From Leucoraja erinacea (Eukaryota): 64,000 nt of DNA. The notes beneath the pieces were generated by a model, which did not search any database, had not been told where the DNA came from, and saw only the letters and a program-made list of their open reading frames with translations. Positions 10,461 through 49,765 of this stretch are shown one piece after another. Positions within the stretch are counted from its first letter, which is position 1, and each line of letters begins with the position of its first letter. The position numbers were made by a program, and so were the translations under genes. The stretch lies in assembly GCF_028641065.1 (NCBI RefSeq), contig NC_073388.1, positions 20,212,001 through 20,276,000 of the forward strand, in the 5' to 3' direction.

Positions 10461-10495
10461 CTGCGGGGCCGCGTCCGGATGTGAGAGGTTTGAGT

Positions 10496-10512
10496 CCGCT
10501 ATAGGATCTTTG
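10496..10512. mobile_element. Half copy (17 bp) of the palindromic micro-element with 8-bp TSD
   Basis: GTTTGAGT-CCGCTATAGGATCTTTG-GTTTGAGT. Confidence 0.8.
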
Positions 10513-11874
10513 GTTTGAGTGCAGTGGCCAGCGGACTAGACCAGTCCGGACATTCGGGCTCAAGAGCCGACACCCTCACCGCCCTGTGCTCCCCTTCACC
10601 CCGAGCACGGACCGCCCGAGAACAGTGCTCGCCCCACCTTCCCCTACAGTCTGAACATTGAACCCCTGCTTTAAAGCGTTCCTCCGTCGTTCCCTGAAGC
10701 TTGCCAGGTTCGTAAATTGTTTAAATTCCTCTCGATTTTATTGCATTAGTAAACATGCATTTACTTGTAAGATGTGGAGTGAGCTCAGCTGCCAGCAGTG
10801 TGTGTGCGATATTGGGACGTTAAATCACAATGAGTGCAGGGGGCGTACTGGAAGAGCTGCAACATTAACGTTTTGTGCAGAGATACGAGATATTTGGTTT
10901 TGTGTCTTGTGCTGCGGCACGTAGCCTTTTTTTTTTAAAGAGCCCACCCCTGCTCTCCTTTACGCTATTGAGACCTAGATTGCCTTCAGTGGTTAACTCG
11001 GAGGACTGGGAAAATACCATAATTGCGGTCTCCGCAAAATCCTTCACATTCTTTGGAATATCGGCGAGCCGATGCAAGTATCTTGATTCTTGGTCCTCCA
11101 AAATATTCCAAATCTCTCAGGTCAACCAATATCCGCTGCATTAAGATCTTGGTTAAAGGCCATGTTAATTACTTGCCTGACATCAAATTCCCAAAATAGA
11201 CATTCTCTTATTTGACATGGACATGGGAAGACACCAAGGATGTGTTCTAAACCTCCTTGAAAAGGAGTCCTGATTCTGATTCCTGCAATCTCTGGTCCAT
11301 TGCTAATTTGCAGTTGCTAAGGGAAAATGAGTATGTGGAATGTGCTGAGAACTTTGAGGAAGGTCCTCTGGACTATCTAGAGATCACCTCAACATGTCCT
11401 TACCTGCCCCAATGGGAACAGTCTGCCACTGCAGCCACGTTAGAACCCATAAAGCCAGAGTGAAAGCAAGTAATTCTTAGTCCCTGGGACTGCCTAAGAA
11501 GACGTAGAGCAAATGCACAGTCATTGATTTCCAATATTCTCTAGATTCTGGAATTGGATTGGACTGTAGATAATGTGACCACTAGTGAGAAATGGAGGGA
11601 TAGAAAAAATGAGGAATTACTGGCCTGATGCCAGTAATTGGGAAATGCTGGTCTGAAGTCAAGAACTAAGTAGCCTTGGAAAGAGTCATAGAGTCAACAT
11701 AAATATTGAAACAAAAATTGTGTTTGATTATTGACTGGAGTTCTTTGGCATGATGTTGCTCTTGCGTTCTTAATGGCACACTGGATCTCTTGCTCTAGTT
11801 AATCCAAGTTGTTACCTGCTCTTCTTTCTCTCTTCACCCTTCCTTTCATAGGGGCAATTCAGGTTGTCGAAGCA

Positions 11875-32974: not shown

Positions 32975-33258
32975 GTTTAGTTTAGAGACACAGCGTGGGC
33001 CCTTCGGCCCACCTAATCCACGCTTACCAGCGATTCCCGCACACTAACACTATCCTGTACACACTCGGGACAATTTACAGAGGTCAATTAACCTACAAAC
33101 CTGTATGTCTTTGGAGAGTGGGAGGAAACCAGAGATCCCGGAGGAAACCCACGCAGTCACGGAGAAAGCGTACAAACTCCGTTCAGACAGCACCCGTGGT
33201 CAGGATCGAACCCGGGTCTCCCGCGCTGTAAGGCAGCAACTCTACCGCTGCGTCAACG
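32975..33258 (-). mobile_element. tRNA-derived SINE (HE1/V-SINE-like)
   Basis: Minus strand: A-box region GCAGCGGTAGAG, B box GGTTCGATCC, central GGTTTCCTCCCAC domain, (CTAAA)n tail. Confidence 0.88.
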
Positions 33259-33264
33259 TCACTC

Positions 33265-33404
33265 CCCCTCCCCCCTCGACATCACGCGCACGCGTACTCC
33301 GAGGGTTCGGGAGGGAGATGAGCAAGTGCGCAGGCGCGGTGACGGCCGCCTGCCCGGGGGGAGGGGAGGGGAGGGGAGGTCGCGGTGTCGGGGTCGCTCG
33401 GTCA
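33265..33404 (+). promoter_or_regulatory. MARS2 CpG-island promoter/5' UTR with NRF1-like site and G-run tract
   Basis: TGCGCAGGCGC at 33327-33337, CGCGCACGCG at 33285, (GGGGA)n at 33356-33379. Confidence 0.65.
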
Positions 33405-33699
33405 ATGTGGAGCTCCGTCAGGCCGCACCTGTCCTGCCGCCTCCCGTCTCTGGGCACCGGCTGCCTCCGGCTGGCCGCCCGGGATGGTCGGGCCTCTGGA
33501 TGCCGCTTGGCCGCGGGTAAGGCGTGTGGACACAGTCCCCGCTCAGGCCCGGCGGCCGCTCCCGGCCCCGTCTTCATCACCACCCCCATCTTCTACGTGA
33601 ATGCGGCTCCTCACATCGGCCATCTGTACTCGGCGGTGCTGGCCGACGCCATGTATCGGCTCAAGCTCTTACTGGGGACCGACGCAAAGTTCACAACAG
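33405..33699 (+). CDS. MARS2: Mitochondrial methionyl-tRNA synthetase exon 1 (transit peptide and HIGH motif)
   Basis: Arg/Ser/Leu-rich N-terminus, [20 protein letters not shown], donor CAG|GTACAG phase 1; alternative in-frame ATG at 33318. Confidence 0.93.
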
Positions 33700-33729
33700 G
33701 TACAGGCGGGCTGGAGCGAAAGCTCCGTA

Positions 33730-33935
33730 GGTCACGGTGGCGCCGCGGTAGAGTTGCTGCCTTAACTTACAGCAAAATGCAGCGCGGGTTCGATCGCGAC
33801 TAAGGGCACTCTGTCTGTACGGAGTTTGTACCAAAGATCCTATAGCGGAGCTATAAGATCTTTGGTTTGTACGATCTCCCCGTGATCTTCTCCGAGATCT
33901 TCGGTTTCCTCCCACACTCCAAAGATGCACAGGAG
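33730..33935 (+). mobile_element. tRNA-derived SINE, 5' part
   Basis: GGTGGCGCCGCGGTAGAGTTGCTGCC, GGTTCGATC, GGTTTCCTCCCACACTCCAAAG. Confidence 0.85.
33832..33864. mobile_element. 33-bp palindromic micro-element with 8-bp TSD, inserted in a SINE
   Basis: GTTTGTAC-CAAAGATCCTATAGCGGAGCTATAAGATCTTTG-GTTTGTAC. Confidence 0.9.
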
Positions 33936-34459
33936 TGTTGTAGAGCGGAGGTAGTCTAGAAGTGCAGGTACATAGTTGCTTGAAAAATAACAATACTGGA
34001 CTCTTGTTTAGTAAGGAACTGCAGATGCCTGAAAATCGAAAGTATGCAAAAATGCTGGAGAAACTCAGCGGGTGAGGCAGCATCTATCATGGAGCGAAGG
34101 ACCCTTCTTCAGACTTAACGCTAAGGTCGCTGGGTCAAATAATGATAAATATTGCTTCAGAGGCGTTTTCTTTTTGTATGTAAAAAACCCACTTGAGAAC
34201 CATTGGCGCTTTTAACATTTTACCAGATTTATCAGTTCTGAAACGTTTTAGATGCCAAAGGAATCAAGAAAAAACACTATTGATGAAATGCAGTGAGCAA
34301 ATGTGATAATTCCCAATATTTTCAATCATGATATCTGCACGGCCAATGTTCGCCAATGTTGCTGTTGTTGTTCCTTAAGCTGTCGCTTCTCTCTACCTTA
34401 ATTTCTCCTCATTTTTGGAATTCTGAAGTAGGATAGGTGTGTCTCACGGTTACCCCGAT

Positions 34460-35548: not shown

Positions 35549-36005
35549 TACTGCTTGTAGAAGACATATTGGTAAATAAATGTCGCTACTGCTTCTGACA
35601 TTTCCATCACTGCTGATTGAGAATGGTAATTAGCAGTTTGGATTTCTCCTGTATTTTGAAGACAAAACATACCTGGCTGATTTTCCAGTTTGGTGGGTAG
35701 ATGTGTTTTATCAATTTGTTATTAATGTGACCAAAGTCGCAGCTGGTTTGCAAATGCAGGTTTTCCATTGACATCCAGGCTGTTATCTGCTCCCTTGACT
35801 GTTGCAACATCCAATGCTCTCAGCTGGTTCCTGAAGATGGAGTAAATCAAATTTTCTTCTGTGATTACAGAGCAAAAGTCATACAGCATGGAAACTTATG
35901 TTTGCCCCAATTCCCTTTAAACCGGTTCTATCCATTTACCTGTCCAAATGTATTTTAAATGCTGTTATAGTATTGCCTCAACTATCTCCGGCAGCTCGTT
36001 CCATA

Positions 36006-37405
36006 TTCAGATTCAGATTCAATTTTAATTGTCATTGTCAGTGTACAGTACAGAGACAACGAAATGCATTTAGCATCTCCCTGGAAGAGCGACATAGCAA
36101 ATGATTTGAATAAATAATAATAAGTGTCCGGGGGGGGGTGGTGATTGGCAGTCACCGAGGTACGTTGTTGAGTAGAGTGACAGCCGCCGGGAAGAAGCTG
36201 TTCCTTGACCTGCTGGTTCGGCAACGGAGAGACCTGTAGCGCCTCCCGGATGGTAGGAGGTTAAACAGTCCATGTTTAGGGTGAGAGCAGTCCTTGGCGA
36301 TGCTGAGCGGCCTCCGCAGACAATGCTTGCTTTGGACAGACTCAATGGAGGGGAGCGAGGAACCGATGATGTGTTGAGCAATTTTCACCACCCTCTGCAA
36401 TGCCTTTCGGTCGGAGACAGAGCAGTTGCCATACCATACTGTGATGCAGTTGTTAAGGATGCTCTCGATGGTGCAGCGGTAGAAGTTCACCAGGATCTGA
36501 GGAGACAGATGGACCTTCTTCAGTCTACTCAGGAAGAAGAGACGCTGGTGAGCCTTCTTGATCAGAGTTGAGGTATTGTGGGTCCAAGAGAGGTCATCGG
36601 AGATGTTGACTCCCAGGAACCTGAAGCTAGAAACACGTTCCACCTTCGTCCCGTTAATGTGGATGGGGGTGTGCGTGCCGCCTCTGGACTTCCTGAAGTC
36701 TACAATGATCTCCTTGGTCTTCTTGGAGTTAAGGGCCAGGTTGTTGTCAGTGCACCATGCTGCTAAGTGCTGGACCTCCTCCCTGTAGGCCGACTCATCG
36801 TTGTTGCTGATGAGGCCAATCACCGTTGTATCATCTGCATACTTGATGATGGTGTTAGTACCATGTACAGGTGTGCAGTTGTAGGTGAAGAGGGAGTAGA
36901 GGAGGGGGCTCAGCACACAGCCCTGTGGAACGCCGGTGTTCAGGGTGAGGGTTGAAGAGGTGTGCTTGTCTAACCTAACAGACTGGGGTCTGTTGGTTAG
37001 AAAGTCCAGTATCCAGTTGCAGAGGGTGTGGTCGATGCCCAGGTTACCGAGTTTGGTGATCAGTTTTGATGGTATGATGGTGTTGAATGCTTTGCTGTAA
37101 TCGATGAACAGCATTCTTACGTAAGTGTCTCTGTTGTCGAGGTGGGAGAGGGCGGAGTGAAGTGCCGTTGAGATGGCATCCTCCGTTCTGTTCTTGCGGT
37201 AGGCAAACTGATAGGGATCCAGTGTGGGGGGTAGGCAGCTTTTGAGGTGTGCCAGGACCAGCCTCTCGAAGCACTTGGTGATGATGGGGGTAAGTGCAAC
37301 TGGGCGGAAGTAGTTGAGGCTTGCCGCAGTGGAGTGTTTTGGCACTGGCACGATGGAGGTGGTTTTAAGTGTTTTGGCACTGGCACGATGGAGGTGGTTT
37401 TAAGT
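36006..37405 (-). mobile_element. Rex1/Babar non-LTR retrotransposon, 5'-truncated, with 399-aa open RT/C-terminal ORF, in MARS2 intron 1
   Basis: RPVALTP...[12 protein letters not shown]...[14 protein letters not shown]...[17 protein letters not shown]; (CTGAAT)n 3' tail; inserted in a CR1 fragment. Confidence 0.93.
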
Positions 37406-38671
37406 GGTTTATATCCACCATTCTCTGTGTGAAAATATTTCCCCCTGGGTTCCTATTAAATCTTGTCGGGATTGCAAGGAGAAAACTGTTTACTTCTGAG
37501 AAATGTGCTTTGTTATGTTACTCCAAGGAACACTTGAGTGGAGACTAGTCGCTGCAGCTATTTATTTAACATTTTGCTGAAGCAGTAAAGCATTTCACTT
37601 TTTATTACCCACATTATTCTCCTTGCAGCATTGGAGCACACATTTAGCCCAGCCTATTATTTCCAATTCTGCACCTATTTTCTCTATCCTATTCCTCCAT
37701 ACTGTATGAACATTATTCCCTGCCCCCCCCCCCCCTTATTTCTTTAACATCTTCCTATCATTCATCTGCGCAATAGGGGAAATGTATAAAAGCCAATTAG
37801 CCTACCATGCCACTGCTATGCAATCATGTAGATGTGACCTGCATGGTGCCATTAGTGAAGCATTGTAATATTAATCACAAGTATGATTAAAATTGCAAAT
37901 CTCATTGGGACATTTTAACAAATCAAGTCATCTTATGCAAGTAAAATTAGAAATTACAAATTTCCACCTTTTCTCTCCACTTGTAGGTCAACAATGTTTG
38001 TATTCTCTCGGTTCCTAACAGTTTAAGTATGGCATATTTTTTGTTAAAAGCATGCTTGCATCCTCCTCTCCCCATTGTGATTGTCATTTGTCATGTTTCA
38101 CACCAATGACAAAGCAAAAGAAAATATTTAAAAAAAAACCCGACAGGTGCTGGAAATATGAAAGAATAATGGAAAATGCTCGATGCACTCAGCAGGCCAG
38201 GCTATATATGTGGAAAGTGAATTGATCTTTGCTTCAAAGGTAGACAAAAATGCTGGAGAAACTCAGCGGGTGGAGCAAAGGTATAAGTGACGTTTCGGGT
38301 CGAGACCCTTCTTCTGATCTTTGCTTCAGGTCACTCGTACTCAGTGTTTTCAATATTTGCTATTTTTGTGGCATAGTTTATCATTGCTTACACGACTGGA
38401 AGCATTGCCTATCCATTTCTTGCACAAATACTGCCTGACCCGCTGAGGGCCTCCAGCACTTTGTATTTTACTTTGTATAGCACTTGTGTGTCTTTTTTTA
38501 GATCCCCAGATCATTTATCCTGGAGTCATTGTTCTTACTGCAGTCAACTATGTCACTTGCTCATTTCTACTCTCATTTTAACTTTGTCTACTCATTTTCT
38601 AATTTCATTGAAATATTTATATTTTTGTTGTCAGATTTAATTCTATAACACAGCTGTTTCATTCATCTCAG

Positions 38672-39006
38672 GGACAGATGAACATGGCCTGAAGATTCAA
38701 CAAGCTGCAGATGCAGCAGCTAAAAACCCATTGGAGTTCTGTGCCAGCGTGTCTGAGGAGTTCAAGAAACTGTTCCACAAGTCCCTGGTTTCATATACAG
38801 ATTACATTCGAACAACAGAGGAGCGTCACAAAACTGCAGTCCAATATTTTTGGTGTGTTCTGCGTGACAAGGGCTACCTCTACCAAGCAGCATACGAGGG
38901 CTGGTATTCCACTCCAGATGAGACTTTCCTTTCTGATTCACAAGTTTTAGAAAGAAAAGACACAAATGGGAACATTATTAAAGTATCTTTGGAAAGTGGT
39001 CACAAG
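38672..39006 (+). CDS. MARS2: MARS2 exon 2 (GTDEHGLKIQQAA...YEGWYSTPDETFL...ESGHK)
   Basis: CTCAG acceptor, MetRS GTDEHG motif, donor AAG|GTACGC. Confidence 0.97.
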
Positions 39007-39778
39007 GTACGCCTGCATTGGGAGTGCACTTATACTATGTACAATAGTGATCAGGAGTATTAAATGTGATTAGTACCTTGAGTTAATTTTCACAATATTT
39101 GAAAAGAGCAGTAGATATGATTGCTCATAACGCTGCTGTGTGCATTATCTGAAATTTTCCATGGTGGAAAGATTAATTTGCTTGTAACAAAAATAGTAAA
39201 TGCTGGTAGTACTCCAGTGAAGCAGCACACTTGGAGAAAGTTAATGTTTCAGATTATTGCTCTTTCATCAGAGTTTATAGTCCAGTAAACTGGCGCATTA
39301 ACTCTTTTTTCTACGTGTTCTGTCTGTAATTCCAGCATTTTCCTTTTTTTATTTTCATCGAGTATGGGGGAAGAGAACGGGGTGGGGTTTTACATTCATC
39401 AGTGTTTTTTGTGTGCAGACTAAAGGTTAAAAAAAATTGAAATTTTGTTTTCCATTAGCACTTAGCTTAACGATGTAATGTGGTTTGCACATTAACCCTG
39501 CTGAAAGTGACCTTGTCGAACCTTTCCATCTCCTGTAGCTTGATTCAACCTCAAAAGATCACCAGCTGCTGTATTAACATATTGTCAGTATCCTATTTGG
39601 CACTGAGTATTTCCTGATAATAGCTTCACTTTTTAAAAAGTATTTTTCACTTATGCAATTATGTTGTACTTCGTGCTTTAGTAAGTATGCACTAGTTGCA
39701 CACTGTAATTTTCACCTGCAGAAAATTGATGCATAACCTTTACTTTGGTTTAGTCTAAATTTGTTTTTTAACCAACAG

Positions 39779-40981
39779 GTAGAATGGACTAAAGAAGAAA
39801 ATTACTTGTTCAAATTGTCTGAGTTTAAACCCAAGTTGTTAGAGTGGTTAAAGAAGAACCCAGAAGTAATAATCCCTGAAAAATTCTATCACATTGTTCT
39901 CCACTGGCTTCAGGAAGAAATACCAGATATATCTGTATCACGACGAAGGAGCCGTTTGAAGTGGGGTATTCCAGTTCCTGCGGATTCAACACAAACAATT
40001 TATGTGTGGTTAGATGCTTTAGTTAATTACTTGACTGTAGCAGGTTATCCAGAGGATCAAAATCTGCCTGCCCTACATCACATTATTGGGAAGGATATTC
40101 TCAAGTTCCATGCCATCTATTGGCCTGCTTTCCTGATGGCAGCTGGTTTGCAGCTACCAAAACAAATCTATGTTCACTCCCATTGGACAGTCAATGGCCA
40201 AAAAATGTCCAAGAGTCGTGGAAATGTTGTTGACCCAATGGAAAGATTTTCTGTATACACTGTTGATGGTTTCAGATATTTTTTGCTGCGGCAAGGTGTG
40301 CCAGATGCGGACTGTGACTATTATGATGATAAAGTGGTGAAAGTTTTAAATGCAGACCTTGCAGATTCATTGGGAGGTCTCCTTAACCGTTGTACAGGCA
40401 CAAGCATAAATCCTGATCAAATTTACACAACATTTTTCAATCACTGCTTTCCTGAAAGACGGCCTGAAGACAACAGCCCCCTGAAAAGCAGAGCAACAAC
40501 TGAAGATTATAAAATGATTCAGACAGTTGAGCAACTACCGATGAATGTTAAGGACAGCTTCGAAAATCTACAAATTTATAAGGCCTTAGAAGCCATTAAT
40601 TTTTGTGTTCGATTAACAAATGGCTTTTTCCAAAGACACACTCCGTGGAAACTTGATGGAAAAATTGCTGAGGATTGCTGCTGGCTGGAAACAGTACTTC
40701 ACATTACTTTAGAGTGCCTACGCATTTATGGGATCTTATTGCAACCAGTGGTCCCAACAATTGCAAATCAACTGCTTTCACGGTTAGCTGTTGGCCCACA
40801 TGAACGAGACTGGGAACATTTGAACTTCTTGGCCAGATACCACAATAATATTTGCATATTTGAAGGAAGAAAGTTAGGTCCAGATACAGGAATCTTGTTT
40901 AACAGATTGGAGAGGATACATAAAGCTCCAAGCAAAACTCGAGGCAATCAGGAGATAAAGTTGCAACATATTCTGAAGTAA
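39779..40981 (+). CDS. MARS2: MARS2 exon 3 (catalytic core, KMSKS, anticodon-binding domain, stop)
   Basis: AACAG acceptor; [36 protein letters not shown]; total CDS 1833 nt; ATTAAA at 41044 and 41053. Confidence 0.98.
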
Positions 40982-41639
40982 ATCTGAGATGTTAAGTCAC
41001 TCACCGTCCTGTGTGAATAATGAATCCTGAAGATATTGTACGTATTAAAGTTATTAAACAATAGATTAATAATTTTTAAATTGTTTGTACAAGTTATTTT
41101 ACTTGCATTATAAATGCGTTTTTCCTCTTTTTTAGGTAATGACATCAGCTCTAACCCGAAAAATTTATGAACATTGGTTTATGACTGCTACAGGCTACAT
41201 GTAACTGACCTGTATGAATTCATCTTTAAGTCTGATATAATTTCATTTACAAACTGTTCTTAATATCTAACCACCTATAGCAGTAATGTATTTTTGTACA
41301 GAATCTAATCTATTTCTAAACCAAATTCATGCTCTTTGAGTAGCAATTTAAGTTTTCAGGTTAATTTATTTTCTTGTGTCAGAATAACTGGTATGTTGTA
41401 TGGGAAAATCATTCTTTTTTGCTTTTGCTTCCCTCAGTATGGTCAAGTATTTGCAGGTTTTTATTCATACAGTTTTATGAATCTGTCTCTCTTTCTCTGC
41501 AACTTAGTATGGTACATTTTGGAAATTGATTTGCTTCAAAGCTACACTCGCCCTTAGTTATGGCACATCTCTATAATGCTGCCATAATTTTGTCAGTTGT
41601 ATCAAATACTAGACGACCTGTTGGGTCCCAGATATCCTC

Positions 41640-42510
41640 GAGACGTTCAGTTATTTGAAATTCCATCGATCTCCTGGGTCCTGCTTAGCCATCCTCCTCT
41701 GCTGTACCACTTGTCTGGCCTGTGGCTCTTGTGGGCGTGGCCCTCTTGTGGGCGTGGTCCTGGGTCGCTGGGCCTGCCAGGGCTTTGACTCAATTCGGTC
41801 CTGCGATTCTGGGGATTGCAGCGGTTCCAGGTATTCCAACATGCCCATCTGCTGCTGGTCGAAGATGCACAGCTCATCAGCGCGGGCCGCTAGCCGGATG
41901 GGATCCTCGAAGCTCTCCCCCGCGAGCTGCTTGCGGATATCTCACGGCAGCTGCTGCAGGTAGGTAAATTCAAAGCAGAGCTGGTGGTTGCCCATGAGCG
42001 TGAGCATCTCGCACATGAGGGCCGAGGACATCCGGTCGCCGAGCCCGCCCATGTTAAGGACCTGACAGGCGCGCTGCATTCGGCTCGGCCCATTGATCCG
42101 GAAAAGCAGCTCCTTGAAGCCTGTGTACTTACCCACCGCCGGCGGATTATCCAGGTAAGGAATGACCCCGACCGGCCGTCTGCTGGTCAAGGGCGCTTAC
42201 CACATAGTGATAGCGAGTCTCATCGGTTGTAACACTGTGGATGTAAAATTGGGATTCGGCCTGTCGGCCTGTAAAACCTCGGCTGCGAGGTCCAAAATGT
42301 CAATTGCTTTAGGAAGACTCTGTTGAGTCCGGCCTCATCGGCCTTGTTTCCTCAAAAACTAGTCGGACACGAGTTGTGTGCATTAGACATGTTTAATCAC
42401 TCTAATACAGCTCCCTACTCCTCCAAGGACACAGGCGTTGCCCGGCCTTAAATACCAAATCTGGTACTGACCCCATGACTATTGGCCTAAATTTGGTATT
42501 TGCTGGTCAC
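41640..42510 (-). mobile_element. Gypsy-type LTR retrotransposon gag remnant, possibly with partial LTR
   Basis: QAESQF..VTTDETRYHYVVSALD....YLDNPPAVGKY..KELL and GLGDRMSSALMCEML...YLQQLP, frameshifted. Confidence 0.75.
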
Positions 42511-42699
42511 TTGTGCAGCATAGAGTGTAAAAGATTCTATAACTAGCTGATAAAATATAATGCCACTATTTTGATGCCTCATTCTTTTTGATTAATTCAA
42601 GTTGACAATTTACAATTCTAGAAGGCAAAGGCTTCAACCCAATAGCTGGACTCAATTGTACTCAAATTATGATTATTTTAATCTTTAGAATGATAAAAA

Positions 42700-43428
42700 C
42701 TATCCACCGGATGGCGCTCTGATGGCAGCCTCACCAAGAGTCGGTCCTTTTCGTCTTTGTTATATTTAGTGTGTTTTTAAAGCATGTGTTAATGTTCTCT
42801 GGTTTTATGTGGGCGGGGTGTCGGGGGAAATGTTTCTTCAGTCTCTTACCTTGCCGGAGATGCAATTGTTTTCCCGGATTGTATCTCCAGTCACTCTGCG
42901 GCCTAACATCGTGGAGGGCGAGGCCTTGCTCAGGACTGACTTTGAGCCCCACTGCGGGGCATGGACTTACCATCAGAGCCGATTCCTTGCCTGCGATTGG
43001 TGCGGACTTTAACATCAAGGAGCTCGCAGTCTTGGGTTGAGACCGACGACGGGAAGCTCCAAAAGCCACACGACGTTCGACTAGCCCCGACCCGGGGTAG
43101 ATCGCCCGGCAGTGGAGAAGCTGAGATCCCCCGACCCCCCCCCCCCGATGCAGGAGCTTGATCGCTCCGATGTGGAGGCCCGCCCCGGCTACGGGAAAGA
43201 TCATCCCAACAACGAAAGGTTAGAGGCCCTCGACCGCTGGAGGTCAAAGGGAGAGATTGAACTTTTTTTTGCCTTGCATCACAGTGAGGAATGCGGCAGA
43301 GTCACTGGTGGATGTTCATTTTAAAAAGTATTTTGTGTGTTCTGTTGCTTTTTATTGGTATGATGACTACGGCAAATCAAATTATTTGAACGTTGTAAAA
43401 TGTACATGGCTAATAAAGTATGATTATG
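42700..43428 (+). mobile_element. Unclassified non-autonomous retroelement, CpG-rich body with LINE-like tail
   Basis: No credible ORF; ends AATAAAGTATGATTATGA with a short tandem tail like Rex/L2 3' ends. Confidence 0.45.
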
Positions 43429-46400
43429 AAAATTAAGGTCAATAAGAAGAGTAATATAATCCTGCAGTTTAATCAAGAATTAAATGATTTCTGCACTCAA
43501 TTATACAGTCAAATTGTACAGCATAAAATAAGCAAGCCTTCAGCCCACTGCATGTATGTCCACTTTATGTCTATCTATATGAATCAGTTTTCTTGCCTTA
43601 ATTTCATATCTCTATGCCCTGCTCATTCAAGTGTCTGTTCAGATGCTACTGTTTGTGCCTACACCACCACCACCTCTTGACAGCTCATTTAGTTTAGTTT
43701 AATTTAGTTTATTGTCACATGTAAAGAGGTACAGTGGAAATCTTTTGTTGCATTCTAACCAGCCAACAGAAAGACTTCATGATTCCAATTAAGCTATTCA
43801 CATGTACAGATACATGATAAGGGTATAACGTTTAGTGCAAGTTTAGTCCAACCAAACATAGTCCGAGGGTCCCCGATGAGGTAGTTAGTTGGTCAGGACT
43901 AGTCTGGTTGTGGTGGGATGCTTCAGTTGCCTGATAACAGCTAGGAAGAAACTGTCCCTGAATCTAGAGGTGTGCATTTTCACACGTCTTTGCCTTTTGC
44001 GCGATGGGAGAGAGAGTGGCCAGGGTGTGACTCATCCTTGATTTATGCTGCTGGCCTTGCCAAGGTGGCGTGAGGTATAAATTGAGTCAATGGAAGGGAG
44101 GTTGGTTTGTGTGATGGTCTGGGCTGCATCCGCAATTTCGAGTAGTCTTGGATGGAGCTGAACCCAAACTAAGCTGCGATGCATCCCGATAAAATGCTTT
44201 TTATGACGCATCTAGAAGTCCTCAGATATCCTTTATACCTCCTCCCTTTCAGCCTGATCATTTTGGACTCGCCAACCATGGAATACAGATTTTATCTATC
44301 CGAAAAAAGACACTGCTGGAATATCTCAACGGGTCAGGCAACATCTCTGGAGAACAATGGATAGGTGACAGTTTGAGTTGGGACCCTTCTTCAATCAATG
44401 CTTCTTCACTTACTTGACCGACACTAAAAAGGAGTCCGAGAAAGGGTCTTGACCTTCTTGTATCTCTTATGCTTGGATGCTTGTATCGCTAGAACTGACT
44501 TCAGCAGCATTTCTCAAGTCATTGCCCATGATCGTGTATGTCCTGCTCTGGGTTAATTTCCCAAAATGTTAAACTTCCTTTGCCAGCTTTTCCAGTTGAT
44601 CAATAGCCTGTTATAACTTGGACAAGCTTCTTCGCTATCCACTATTTTGGTATCAGTTGCAAACTCACTGATCGTGCCAGCTTCATTCTCATCTGAATCT
44701 TTGATATAAATGACAAATAACAAAGGATCTGGGACCCACCCCAGGCCTCAGTGTGAAAATATCCCTCTTCTACCACTCTGTACCTCCTACCATCAACCCA
44801 ATTTTGTATCCAGATGGCTAGCTCATCCTAGATCCCATATCCCTTAGTCTTCAGGGCCAGCCTATCATGGGGCATTGTCAAAATGTTTACTAAAATCAAT
44901 CAAATGTACAGCACAGAACCAAGCCCTTCAGCCCACTGAGTCCAGTCCAATTATTTACACTAATTCTACATAATCCTAATTCTGGATTACTCCTATATGC
45001 TACCTTTGACTCACCAATTTCCCTTTATCCTTTGTACCCAGACAACACGCGGTACATAACAATGGTCAATTAATCTACCAATCTGCGTGTTGTTGGGAGT
45101 AAAATAGAGCACCCAGAGGAAACTTGTGCATCATTTGCAAACTAAACACACTCTACATAGGATTGAACATGGGTCAGGATTGAACATAGGTTTCCAGTGC
45201 CATGAGATGGTGGCACCACTAGTGCTACTGTGCCATCCCAAAGCAATTTGTGGTCATGTACCCATCAATGTAATTTCAGATCCTAATTGTTTAATATTAA
45301 AGCAGCTGTCAATGTTATGAATATTCACTTTTTTTTCAACAATTAAAATAGGAAATGTAGGGGAATTATAGTCATGAGGAAACTGTATTTGAAAATGTTA
45401 AATCTTCAGTTCTTCACTGTTCTGGTGCAAAGTCATCGTACTGAAGTAATTCTGTGCTTGACTCCATTACTGTTTCCTGAACTGTTGAGTAGCTTTCAAG
45501 TAAAGTAATAAATCAGGCCACAGGACAGATATTTTCTTCTGTGACTTGCAAGTTTTAATAGATGCAGTGTTAAGAGAGACGCAGATAAAAGCCTGAAAAT
45601 GTTGGCAGTCTAGATTCATTAATGTTATCACAATGTCGGGGTCAATCAAGGTAAAATAGGGTTATGAAGTTGTGAATGTTTTGGTACAGATTGAGTTAAA
45701 GTTTGGGAATGTCTGATCTGTCATCCGGTATTATCTTGATAATAAATGTACTATATTTCTTGGATCCCTTAACTCTTGATTTCATTATAAACCTAAAATG
45801 TGGTTATTACTTTATAAATGCATTCAGTTGCTCAATCTAGGACCTCCTGAGAGAAATCCCTCTTCATTTCGGTCCAAAATGGATGACACCATATTCTGAT
45901 CCCAATTCCAGATTCCTACACAAGGGGGAAACAGTCTCCTATTATCTATGACCTCCAGTCCCTTCAGAATTGTATATGATCCAACACCAAATTAATACAA
46001 TGTTAAGCAAATATGGAAGAGGAGGACTTCCTGCTCATTTGGAATAATGTTTGAATTCTAACCTTCATGAAGAACCGTAGCAATGATGCTGAAGTGGCCT
46101 GATAAAAGTAAATAGAGAAAGGTATTTAAAAAGTAAGCATGGAAATAAAACAAACCAAGGTTCAAGCACAGTGGACAAATTAAGGCTGTAAATTTATTTC
46201 TCATACTTAAATAGACATGAAGTATAATTGAATTAAAACTAAGATTTCTTAAAACAAATGATTTAATTATATTTGTAACGTCTGCTGAATGCTGAGCAGC
46301 AAAACATGATTTTTTTTTTTAACAAACTCACACCGATAGAATAGCTTTCTAAGCATTCACCTTGTGATTTTATATTGAGTGGAACCATTTCAATGCAAGT

Positions 46401-46867: not shown

Positions 46868-49765
46868 TCAAGTCAACTTTATTTGTCACATACGCATACA
46901 AGTTGTGCAATGAAATGAAAGTGGCAATGCCTGCGGATTGTGCAAAAATAACAAAACAAAACAGAACAGAACCAGTATTTACATTTTAGAAAAATAAAAA
47001 GACACAACACAACAGTAAATTAGTCCCTGGTGAGATAAGAGTTTACAGTCCTGATGGCCTGTGGGACAAAACTCCGTCTCATCCACTCTGTTTTCGCAGC
47101 GTGACAGCGGAGGCACTTGCCTGATCGTAGCAACTGGAACAGTCCGTTGCTGGGGTGGTATGGGTCCATCATTATCTTGCTGGCTCTGGATCTGCACCTC
47201 CAGGTGTATAGGTCCTGCAGGGGTGGTGAGTGCAGTTCCCATAGTGCGTTTGGCCAAATGCACTACTCTGTGCAGAGCCTTCCTGTCCTGAGCAGAGCTG
47301 TTCTCAAATTAGATCGAGATGTTACCGGACAGGATGCTTTCTACAGCCCCAGAGTAGAAGGACTGAAGAATCCTCAGAGAGACTGAATTTCCTCAGCTGC
47401 CTTAGATGGTAAAGGTGCTGCCTTGTCTTCCTCACCAGTGCGGCAGTGTGTGATGTTCATGTCAGATCCTCTGTGATGTGGACTCCCAGGTACGTATTTA
47501 AAGCAGCTCGCCCTATCCACAGTAGTCCCATTTATCCCCAGTGGCATGTACGTCCCCAGTTATTGTGCCCTTCTAAAGTCCACAATCAGCTTCTTAGTTT
47601 TTGTGACATTCAAGAGGAGGCTGTTGTCCCGACACCAGAGTGCCAGGTCAGCCACCTCCTCCAGGTAGGCCTTATCATCGTTATGGCCCACCACCACAGT
47701 GTCATCAGCAAACTTAATGATGGAGTTGGAGCTGAACCTGGCCACACAGTCATGTGTGTACAGGGAGTGCAGTAGAGAGCTGAGGACGTATCCCTGGGGG
47801 GGATCCTGTGTTCAGGGTGAGGGGGTTGGAGGTATGTCTCCCCATCTTAAGCACCTGGGGCCTGGTGGTGAGAAAGTTCAGGACCCAGGCACACAGAGGG
47901 GTGTTCAGCCCCAGTTCCAGCAGCTTCTCAGCAAGTCTGGTGGGGACGATGGTGTTGAAAGCTGAACTGAAATCAATGAACAGCATGCTCACATACCCTC
48001 CCTTCTGGCTGTCAAAGTGAGAGAGAGCGGTGTGCAGAACCTGGGAGACCGCATCATCCATGGATCTGTTTGGACGGTATGCGAACTGCAGCGGGTCCAT
48101 GGTGCGAGGGAGGAAGCCGCAGATGCAGTTCTTGATCAGCCTCTCGAAGCATTTCATGACTACCAAGGTGAGAGCCACCAGTCGGTAGTCATTCAAGCAG
48201 GCTGGAGAGGCATTCTTAGGCACTGGTACAATGGTGGATCTTTTGAAGCAGGCAGGGACCACGGACTTGGCCAGGGAGAGGTTGAATATTGTGGTGAGCA
48301 CTGGAGCAAGCTGATTAGCGCAAGACTTTAGTACTCGCCCAGATTTACCATCTGGGCGTACAGCTTTCCTCATGTTCACACACGTCAGAGCCCTCCTCAC
48401 GTCGTGCTCGGACACCGAGAATGTGTGCACATCCCCAGCGGTGGACCTCCCTCCAGCCTCGCTAGCCAGCGCGCCGGCGGTGTTATAGTTAGCTGGCGAG
48501 CTAGGGGTGATGTTGCTCATCTCGAATCGTGCGTAAAAAGAGTTTAGGTCATCAGCTAAGGAGATGCCGGCACGCCCGGTCGAGGGGAGGATGCTCTGGT
48601 AGTTAGTTATAGTCCGTAGCCCCTGCCAAAGGCGCCTGGTGTCCCACTGCTCCATCTGCGACTCCATCCTGTCCCTGTACCTCCTTCTTGCGTCCTTCAC
48701 CGGCCTTCGCAGTCTGTACGACTCTACCTTGTAGTCGATCATACTGCCGGATGCCAGGCCGGAGTTGTAAGCAGCGGTGTGAGCATTCAAGGCAACGCGA
48801 ATGGACCTGTCCACCCAGGATTTTTGATTAGGAAAGATGTGAACCCTTACCGTGGGGCCAATGTTATCAGCTATTGTTGCAATGAAGTCCGTGACTCCTT
48901 TCGCGAACTCACTGATGTCTCTGGAACTTGATTGGAACATATTCCTGTTGACATCGCTCATTGCATCCTGCAGCATGGCCTCTGAATGGTCAGACCACTG
49001 CTTTATGTCCCTCGTCACTGCCGCTTCCCATACTATCCGTTGTTTATACTCCGGCAACAGGAAAATGGCATCATGGGCAGATTTTCCAAAAGGAGGGAGA
49101 GAAACGGCCTTATATCCTTTCCTGAACGGCGTGTAGCAGTGGTCCAAAATTCTTTCCCCCCTGGTGACACATGTGATGTGTTGACAGAAGTTAGGCATAA
49201 CCTTTTTGAGATTTTCCTTATTAAAATCCCCAGCCATCAGCATAGCCGCATCAGGGTTTTTGTACTGATGCCGACATAACACATCGTGTAGGGCCAATAG
49301 TGCCACATCGGTGTCCGCATACGATGGTATGTAGATGGCTGTGATGATCACTGAGCTGAACTCATGGGGAAGGTAGAATGGACGGCATGAGATAGTCAGA
49401 TGCTCCAGGTCAGGCGGGCAGAAACGAGAAAGCGTATTAATATTCCTAGGTTTGCACCAGCTATTATTGGTCATGAAGCAAACTCCTCCACCCTTTGATT
49501 TCCTGGATTCTTCCGTTCTGTCCGCACGGAAAACGGACTCGATTGGGCAAATTACTTGATCCGGCACCAGCGTTCAGCCATGTCTCGGTCAAACAGAAGA
49601 TGTTGCAGTCTCTTATGTCCTGCTGGAAGATAATCCTCGCCCTGAGGTCATCCAACTTGTTCTCCAGGGTCTGGACGTTAGCCAGAAGGATGCTGGGCAG
49701 AGGTGGACGGAGGACTTGGGCTCTTAGCCTATTCTGAATACCCCCCGCTTACCTCGATGTTTTCG
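46868..49765 (-). mobile_element. Near full-length Rex1/Babar ORF (APE endonuclease plus RT), inserted in a CR1 fragment
   Basis: LPSILLANV..LENK, CLTETWL, AGDFN, LDHCY, 605-aa ORF with MLFIDFSSAFNTI, KFADD; CR1 sequence resumes on both flanks. Confidence 0.93.

Follow-up and report, generated by a model that had tools for sequence, protein, structure and literature searches.

What left three short, largely palindromic sequences, each held between two identical 8-bp repeats, in a 64,000-nt stretch of the genome of the skate Leucoraja erinacea? The stretch (RefSeq assembly GCF_028641065.1, contig NC_073388.1, positions 20,212,001 to 20,276,000 of the forward strand) is called the window here, and positions are counted from its first letter. 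An earlier note, made from the letters alone, had proposed either an ultra-small transposon of 17-33 bp present in three copies or a footprint of a larger element of the hAT superfamily. Our analysis indicates that the palindromes are probably scars, left in CpG-rich DNA where a larger cut-and-paste transposon with P-element-type cutting was excised. Excision, a 17-nt stagger and a P-type parent are what we infer from the chemistry that the anatomy of the scars implies.

The three positions reported earlier proved correct: with their flanking repeats, the remnants occupy 33824-33872 (copy 1), 1141-1184 (copy 2) and 10488-10520 (copy 3). Copy 1 is a 33-bp imperfect palindrome with GTTTGTAC on both sides (33824-33831 and 33865-33872), copy 2 is a 28-bp palindrome (1149-1176) between two copies of AGCTGCAC (1141-1148 and 1177-1184), and copy 3 is a 17-bp half (10496-10512) between two copies of GTTTGAGT (10488-10495 and 10513-10520). 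The 8-bp duplication is intact and perfect in all three; its boundaries were placed by sequence inspection and, on the left of copy 1, by its identity to the right-hand octamer and by the single octamer of a paralogous short interspersed element (SINE). Common to all three remnants is a 14-nt end, CAAAGATCCTATAG.

This end is rare in the window. Allowing up to 2 mismatches, it has five matches in the 64 kb, all of them within the three remnants; dinucleotide shuffles gave a mean of 0.55 matches, and 0 of 100 shuffles reached 5. We also scanned the window with a pattern blind to the family sequence, namely a perfect 8-bp direct repeat around an inverted-repeat core of 10-70 bp with arms of at least 10. 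Copies 1 and 2 were the sole matches to this pattern, and none was found in 100 dinucleotide shuffles. All three scars of this one family lie within 33 kb (1141-33872), a cluster that could reflect the density of CpG islands or local hopping.

The composition of each remnant becomes clear when the copies are compared with one another. The left end of copy 1 (33832-33848, plus strand) is identical over 17 nt to the reverse complement of copy 3 (10496-10512, minus strand). Because these two agree over 17 nt, the family end in this genome must be at least 17 nt long (CAAAGATCCTATAGCGG), not 14, and the earlier parse of copy 1 as 14 + 5 + 14 is better replaced by 17 + 1 + 15. On this decomposition, copy 1 consists of 17 nt kept from the left end, a single A at 33849 that is either a filler letter or the substituted 16th letter of the right end, and 15 nt kept from the right end with one substitution (33850-33864, minus strand, placed by the end search and junction decomposition), so that 32 of its 33 letters come from the two ends. 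Copy 2 is made of two 15-nt ends, the left one with one substitution, that overlap by 2 nt at GC (15 + 15 - 2 = 28). Junction decomposition shows copy 3 to be a one-sided scar, with 17 nt of one end joined straight to the duplication and 0 nt of the other. In other words, the left end of copy 1 and the right end of copy 3, which belong to two independent skate scars, retain the same 17 nt and both stop there. The skate arms carry 2 substitutions in approximately 73 letters, which indicates that the events were not very recent.

A two-armed arrangement of the same kind was found outside the skate genome. We searched other collections with a two-armed pattern, which detects only two-armed scars with a spacer of 0-8 or 0-12 nt and is blind to one-sided scars and full elements. 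It returned two contigs from one sample of JGI metagenome Ga0209365, L001 (positions 382-430) and L002 (positions 1777-1828); 596 Gb of prokaryote genomes and a set of viral contigs yielded none. In L001, 33 bp that read as 17 + 16 lie between perfect copies of CCCATGAT; in L002, 36 bp that read as 17 + 2 + 17 or 18 + 18 lie between ATCATGAT and ATCATGGT, a duplication with a single mismatch. Both duplications contain CATGAT. The ends in the two contigs equal the skate end over the first 14 nt and diverge from the 15th letter, and otherwise the contigs share nothing with the window. L001 carries a eukaryotic PHD-finger frame, and its protein-cluster leads are weak (best score 0.88, a eukaryotic PHD-finger, with Mollusca or Arthropoda commonest). 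The scar family or a close relative is present in a second eukaryote, which these weak leads suggest is an invertebrate.

Taking the three window copies and the two metagenome copies together, we found five different internal junctions in five copies, with none of the 10 possible pairs alike and with lengths of 33, 28, 17, 33 and 36 bp. Each junction consists of at most 17 nt per end plus either 0-2 filler letters or an overlap of 1-2 nt. Nine of the 10 ends scored keep 15-17 nt, and the remaining one keeps 0-1 nt. No arm in the five copies is demonstrably longer than 17-18 nt, and this limit of about 17 nt is drawn from few ends and from a reference end that is itself 17 nt, against which longer arms are not scorable as such. 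Independent repair events would be expected to differ in this way, whereas copies of one mobile master would not.

The site of copy 1 can be compared with its uninterrupted form. The earlier note saw that copy 1 interrupts a SINE, and a second copy of this repeat bears it out: the SINE at 33090-33275 (minus strand) has a single GTTTGTAC and lacks the insert at the corresponding position. The interrupted SINE extends from 33720 to 33945 (plus strand), as delimited by comparison with the paralogous copy and by alignments of read contigs; the two lie approximately 600 bp apart and are about 73-75% identical. Since the paralogous SINE has one octamer and no insert, the octamer at copy 1 was duplicated by insertion, and the copy 1 event is younger than the SINE copy that it interrupts. 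The two copies of this tRNA-like SINE, which point in opposite directions, flank the first coding piece of a gene for methionyl-tRNA synthetase.

We aligned read contigs of four out of 24 sequencing runs (X15, X17, X4 and X7, each from a different organism) to positions 33300-34400 around copy 1. Orthologous contigs end inside the SINE, at 33759-33760 in three runs and at 33807 in X7, and none of them bridges copy 1. Over the rest of the copy 1 region lie some 36,000-46,000 paralogous SINE contigs per run, thousands of which align as far as 33831, where the first duplication ends, and restart at 33888 or later. The core of the SINE (33892-33928) has a word depth of 4-8 million in the runs aligned. 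A short repeat nearby, at 34040-34113, reaches summed word depths of up to approximately 5-13 million in all four runs and is among the most abundant sequences in these genomes.

All three copies lie in CpG-rich DNA, as had been claimed. We called a segment CpG-island-like when its GC content was at least 0.5 and its ratio of observed to expected CpG at least 0.6, a definition that covers 16.2% of the window. By these two measures, copy 1 shares the segment 32661-34140 with the first synthetase coding piece (33570-33704, plus strand), copy 2 lies in the segment 521-1500, and copy 3 lies in the segment 9841-11030; the corresponding probability is 0.162^3 = 0.004, for n = 3 only. The additional claim that two copies lie at gene 5' ends was upheld for copy 1, which lies approximately 120 bp past the first coding piece of the methionyl-tRNA synthetase gene, but not for copies 2 and 3, where no Pfam match was found among the 10-20 open frames from their CpG islands. 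The data on an insertion preference for promoters or open chromatin are therefore three of three copies in CpG-island-like DNA, with n = 3 and with a gene start only near copy 1.

The synthetase gene has at least three coding pieces on the plus strand (33570-33704, 38653-38946 and 39752-40978). Within the first gap, of approximately 5 kb, lie the SINE with copy 1, further repeats and, on the opposite strand, a long reverse-transcriptase frame (36155-37399). That frame, which also has an ALKBH8_N-like stretch, and a second open reverse-transcriptase frame at 47753-49573, likewise on the minus strand, are retroelement copies. The open frames of the first and second halves of the window also include a match to Cyclin_N (E 6.5e-09) and one to Ras/Roc (E 8e-14), respectively.

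A longer element with these ends would be the natural parent of such remnants. We found none in the window when searching with ends of 17, 12 and 10 nt at 4, 2 and 1 mismatches, respectively. The relaxed searches gave some extra matches, which had neither a partner end nor a duplication and which we attribute to chance. Pfam comparison of all 217 stop-to-stop frames of at least 70 aa in the window gave no THAP, P-transposase or hAT domain; the only matches among these frames were to tRNA-synt_1g, Cyclin_N, Ras/Roc, RVT_1 and ALKBH8_N.

The anatomy of the remnants is consistent with the cutting described for the P element. According to PMC7776569, the cut that P transposase makes is staggered: the 3' strand is cleaved where the element ends, the other one 17 nt farther in, within the inverted repeat. 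This cleavage results in 17-nt 3' tails beside the 8-bp duplication. Under the proposed excision, a DNA transposon of the cut-and-paste type, longer than the remnants, would once have occupied each site in the skate; its ends would have started with CAAAGATCCTATAGCGG, and its insertion would have generated the 8-bp target duplication. The element would later have been excised from each site by a transposase with the staggered cut of the Drosophila enzyme, one strand being severed at the edge of the element and the opposite one approximately 17 nt inside the inverted repeat, leaving a 17-nt single-stranded tail of the element on each flank. Host end joining may then have fused these non-complementary tails in different ways: bluntly or with a filler letter at copy 1 (17 + 1 + 15), at a 2-nt microhomology at copy 2 (15 + 15, with GC in common) and after the loss of one tail at copy 3 (0 + 17). 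The product would in each case be a short palindrome within an intact duplication, that is, a fossil scar and not a mobile unit. The position of the scars in CpG islands would then mark the insertion sites of the parent in open, promoter-like chromatin, much as fly P elements favor promoters as well as replication origins (PMC7776569).

Three other explanations have to be weighed against excision of this kind, two of them involving hAT elements. These elements end in the motif YARNG, and their duplications have T at position 2 and A at position 7. The end CAAAG fits the motif, and T2 or A7 is found at 7 of the 10 duplication positions (binomial 0.008). The earlier note had taken the 8-bp duplication and a GTnnnnAC-like target as signs of hAT, and both features are present; the fly P motif fits them equally well, with a duplicated core of GTCCGGAC (PMC2577343). 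Because that core has the same T2 and A7, these letters do not separate hAT from P. They, the terminal CAAAG and the 8-bp duplication would suit the view that extreme internal deletion of a hAT or another 8-bp-duplicating element, or of a miniature inverted-repeat transposable element (MITE), produced the remnants, through abortive gap repair or replication slippage between the inverted ends and never by clean excision. We regard this as unlikely. Deletion of that sort should leave arms of widely varying length, whereas nearly all the ends scored keep 15-17 nt and two independent scars end at the same 17th letter. The filler letters and 2-nt overlaps are marks of end joining, as documented in PMC2895639, and the hAT excision products described in PMC5873905 are without element letters. 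The earlier suggestion of a footprint left by a larger hAT was right as to the kind of event, a footprint, but the anatomy does not support its attribution to hAT.

If the remnants are scars of excision, they could in principle come from a superfamily other than P, hAT-like or unclassified, that duplicates 8 bp and whose transposase cuts within the inverted repeats with a long stagger. The anatomy of a scar informs on chemistry and not on the protein, and the skate end, which starts CAAAG, is unlike the P-type ends quoted for fly and zebrafish, which start CAT, beyond the letters CA. Against such a source stands the 17-nt stagger, which PMC7776569 describes as unusual and as distinctive of the P element transposase, and we keep a non-P parent as a rival of low probability. 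Less probable still is that the palindromes of 17-33 bp are themselves mobile, as minimal non-autonomous elements of two inverted repeats moved in trans. Several copies do have perfect duplications, and an unrelated eukaryotic sample contains these ends too. However, no two of the five copies are alike in both length and junction, which is at odds with an ultra-small transposon in three copies, and copy 3, having one end, could be cut on one side only. Movement of P-type elements takes more than 100 bp per end; for deleted Drosophila P elements the minimum is 138 bp of one end and 216 bp of the other (PMC1562414), and remnants of 17-33 bp would therefore be expected not to move.

Excision by P-type cutting is thus the reading that we retain. 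It lends itself to a wider one, which we favor with some hesitation: a P-type family was mobile in the germline of a cartilaginous fish, was targeted to CpG-island promoters and was cut with a fly-like 17-nt stagger, and the 14-nt end that it shares with a second eukaryote reflects spread across phyla, possibly by horizontal transfer. To our knowledge, cutting by vertebrate P-type enzymes is known only from assays. According to PMC7776569, vertebrate P-type transposases are known mainly as the domesticated THAP9 gene and the Pdre elements of zebrafish. Our search of published papers returned none on such scars in vertebrate genomes or on P elements in skates. Scars of this kind are known from fly genetics; their survival as fossils in a vertebrate genome seems not to have been described before.

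If the scars are what we propose, they would record repeated insertion and excision of a P-type family in a vertebrate germline, and the cut geometry of a vertebrate P-type transposase, its stagger, could be read from genome sequence with no experiment. They would also mark CpG-island promoters as targets of the family. Furthermore, they would account for short perfect palindromes at promoters, a class that annotation pipelines would miss or call new elements, and would correct the idea of a 17-33 bp unit that transposes.

Among known systems, the footprints of hAT elements such as Ac/Ds resemble the skate remnants in combining an 8-bp duplication with a scar at the donor site. According to PMC5873905, however, hAT donor sites are repaired from hairpins formed on the flanks, which results in short deletions or palindromic additions of flanking sequence and no element ends; the window copies instead retain 15-17 nt of the element ends, and their junctions are not of the flank-hairpin type. 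MITEs derived from P elements in Anopheles and Drosophila (PMC1562414, PMC3698922) have the inverted ends of their parent and an 8-bp duplication and are non-coding, as here. Their copies are hundreds of base pairs long and share an interior and subterminal parent sequence, while the remnants described here are 17-36 bp long, have no common interior and differ from one another; a common length and interior with both ends present would characterize MITEs, but here no junction recurs and one of the ends is missing from copy 3. Also comparable are the P-like elements of vertebrates, Pdre2 of zebrafish and THAP9, which likewise have 8-bp duplications and have short inverted repeats of 13 bp. They differ in the sequence of their ends and, in the accounts of them that we drew on, in their excision products, which are deletions and rearrangements rather than 17 + 17 scars; those accounts describe no genomic fossil scars.

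The closest counterpart is the Drosophila P element itself. Its target motif, ATRGTCCGGACWAT, is palindromic (PMC2577343). Its end and the skate end are unrelated beyond CA, and the stagger in the skate is read from the scars. The fly junctions are experimental and arose within one generation, whereas the skate scars would be old germline fossils, as the substitutions in their arms suggest. In anatomy, however, the two agree. P footprints, for example those of P{wa} excision, have intact 8-bp duplications, retain no more than 17 nt from either inverted repeat and show the same kinds of join. In the donor junctions tabulated by Chan, Yu and McVey (2010, PMC2895639, Table 1), the two outer duplications enclose up to 17 nt from each end, with a microhomology or an insert between them. 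The classes given there are microhomologies of 1-3 nt, of which 2 nt is the commonest (14 isolates), insertions that are short or of 1 nt, and one-sided joins with hardly anything left of one tail. Each of the three skate copies has its like among these classes: copy 2 corresponds to the 2-nt microhomology class, copy 1 to the 1-nt insertions and copy 3 to the one-sided joins.
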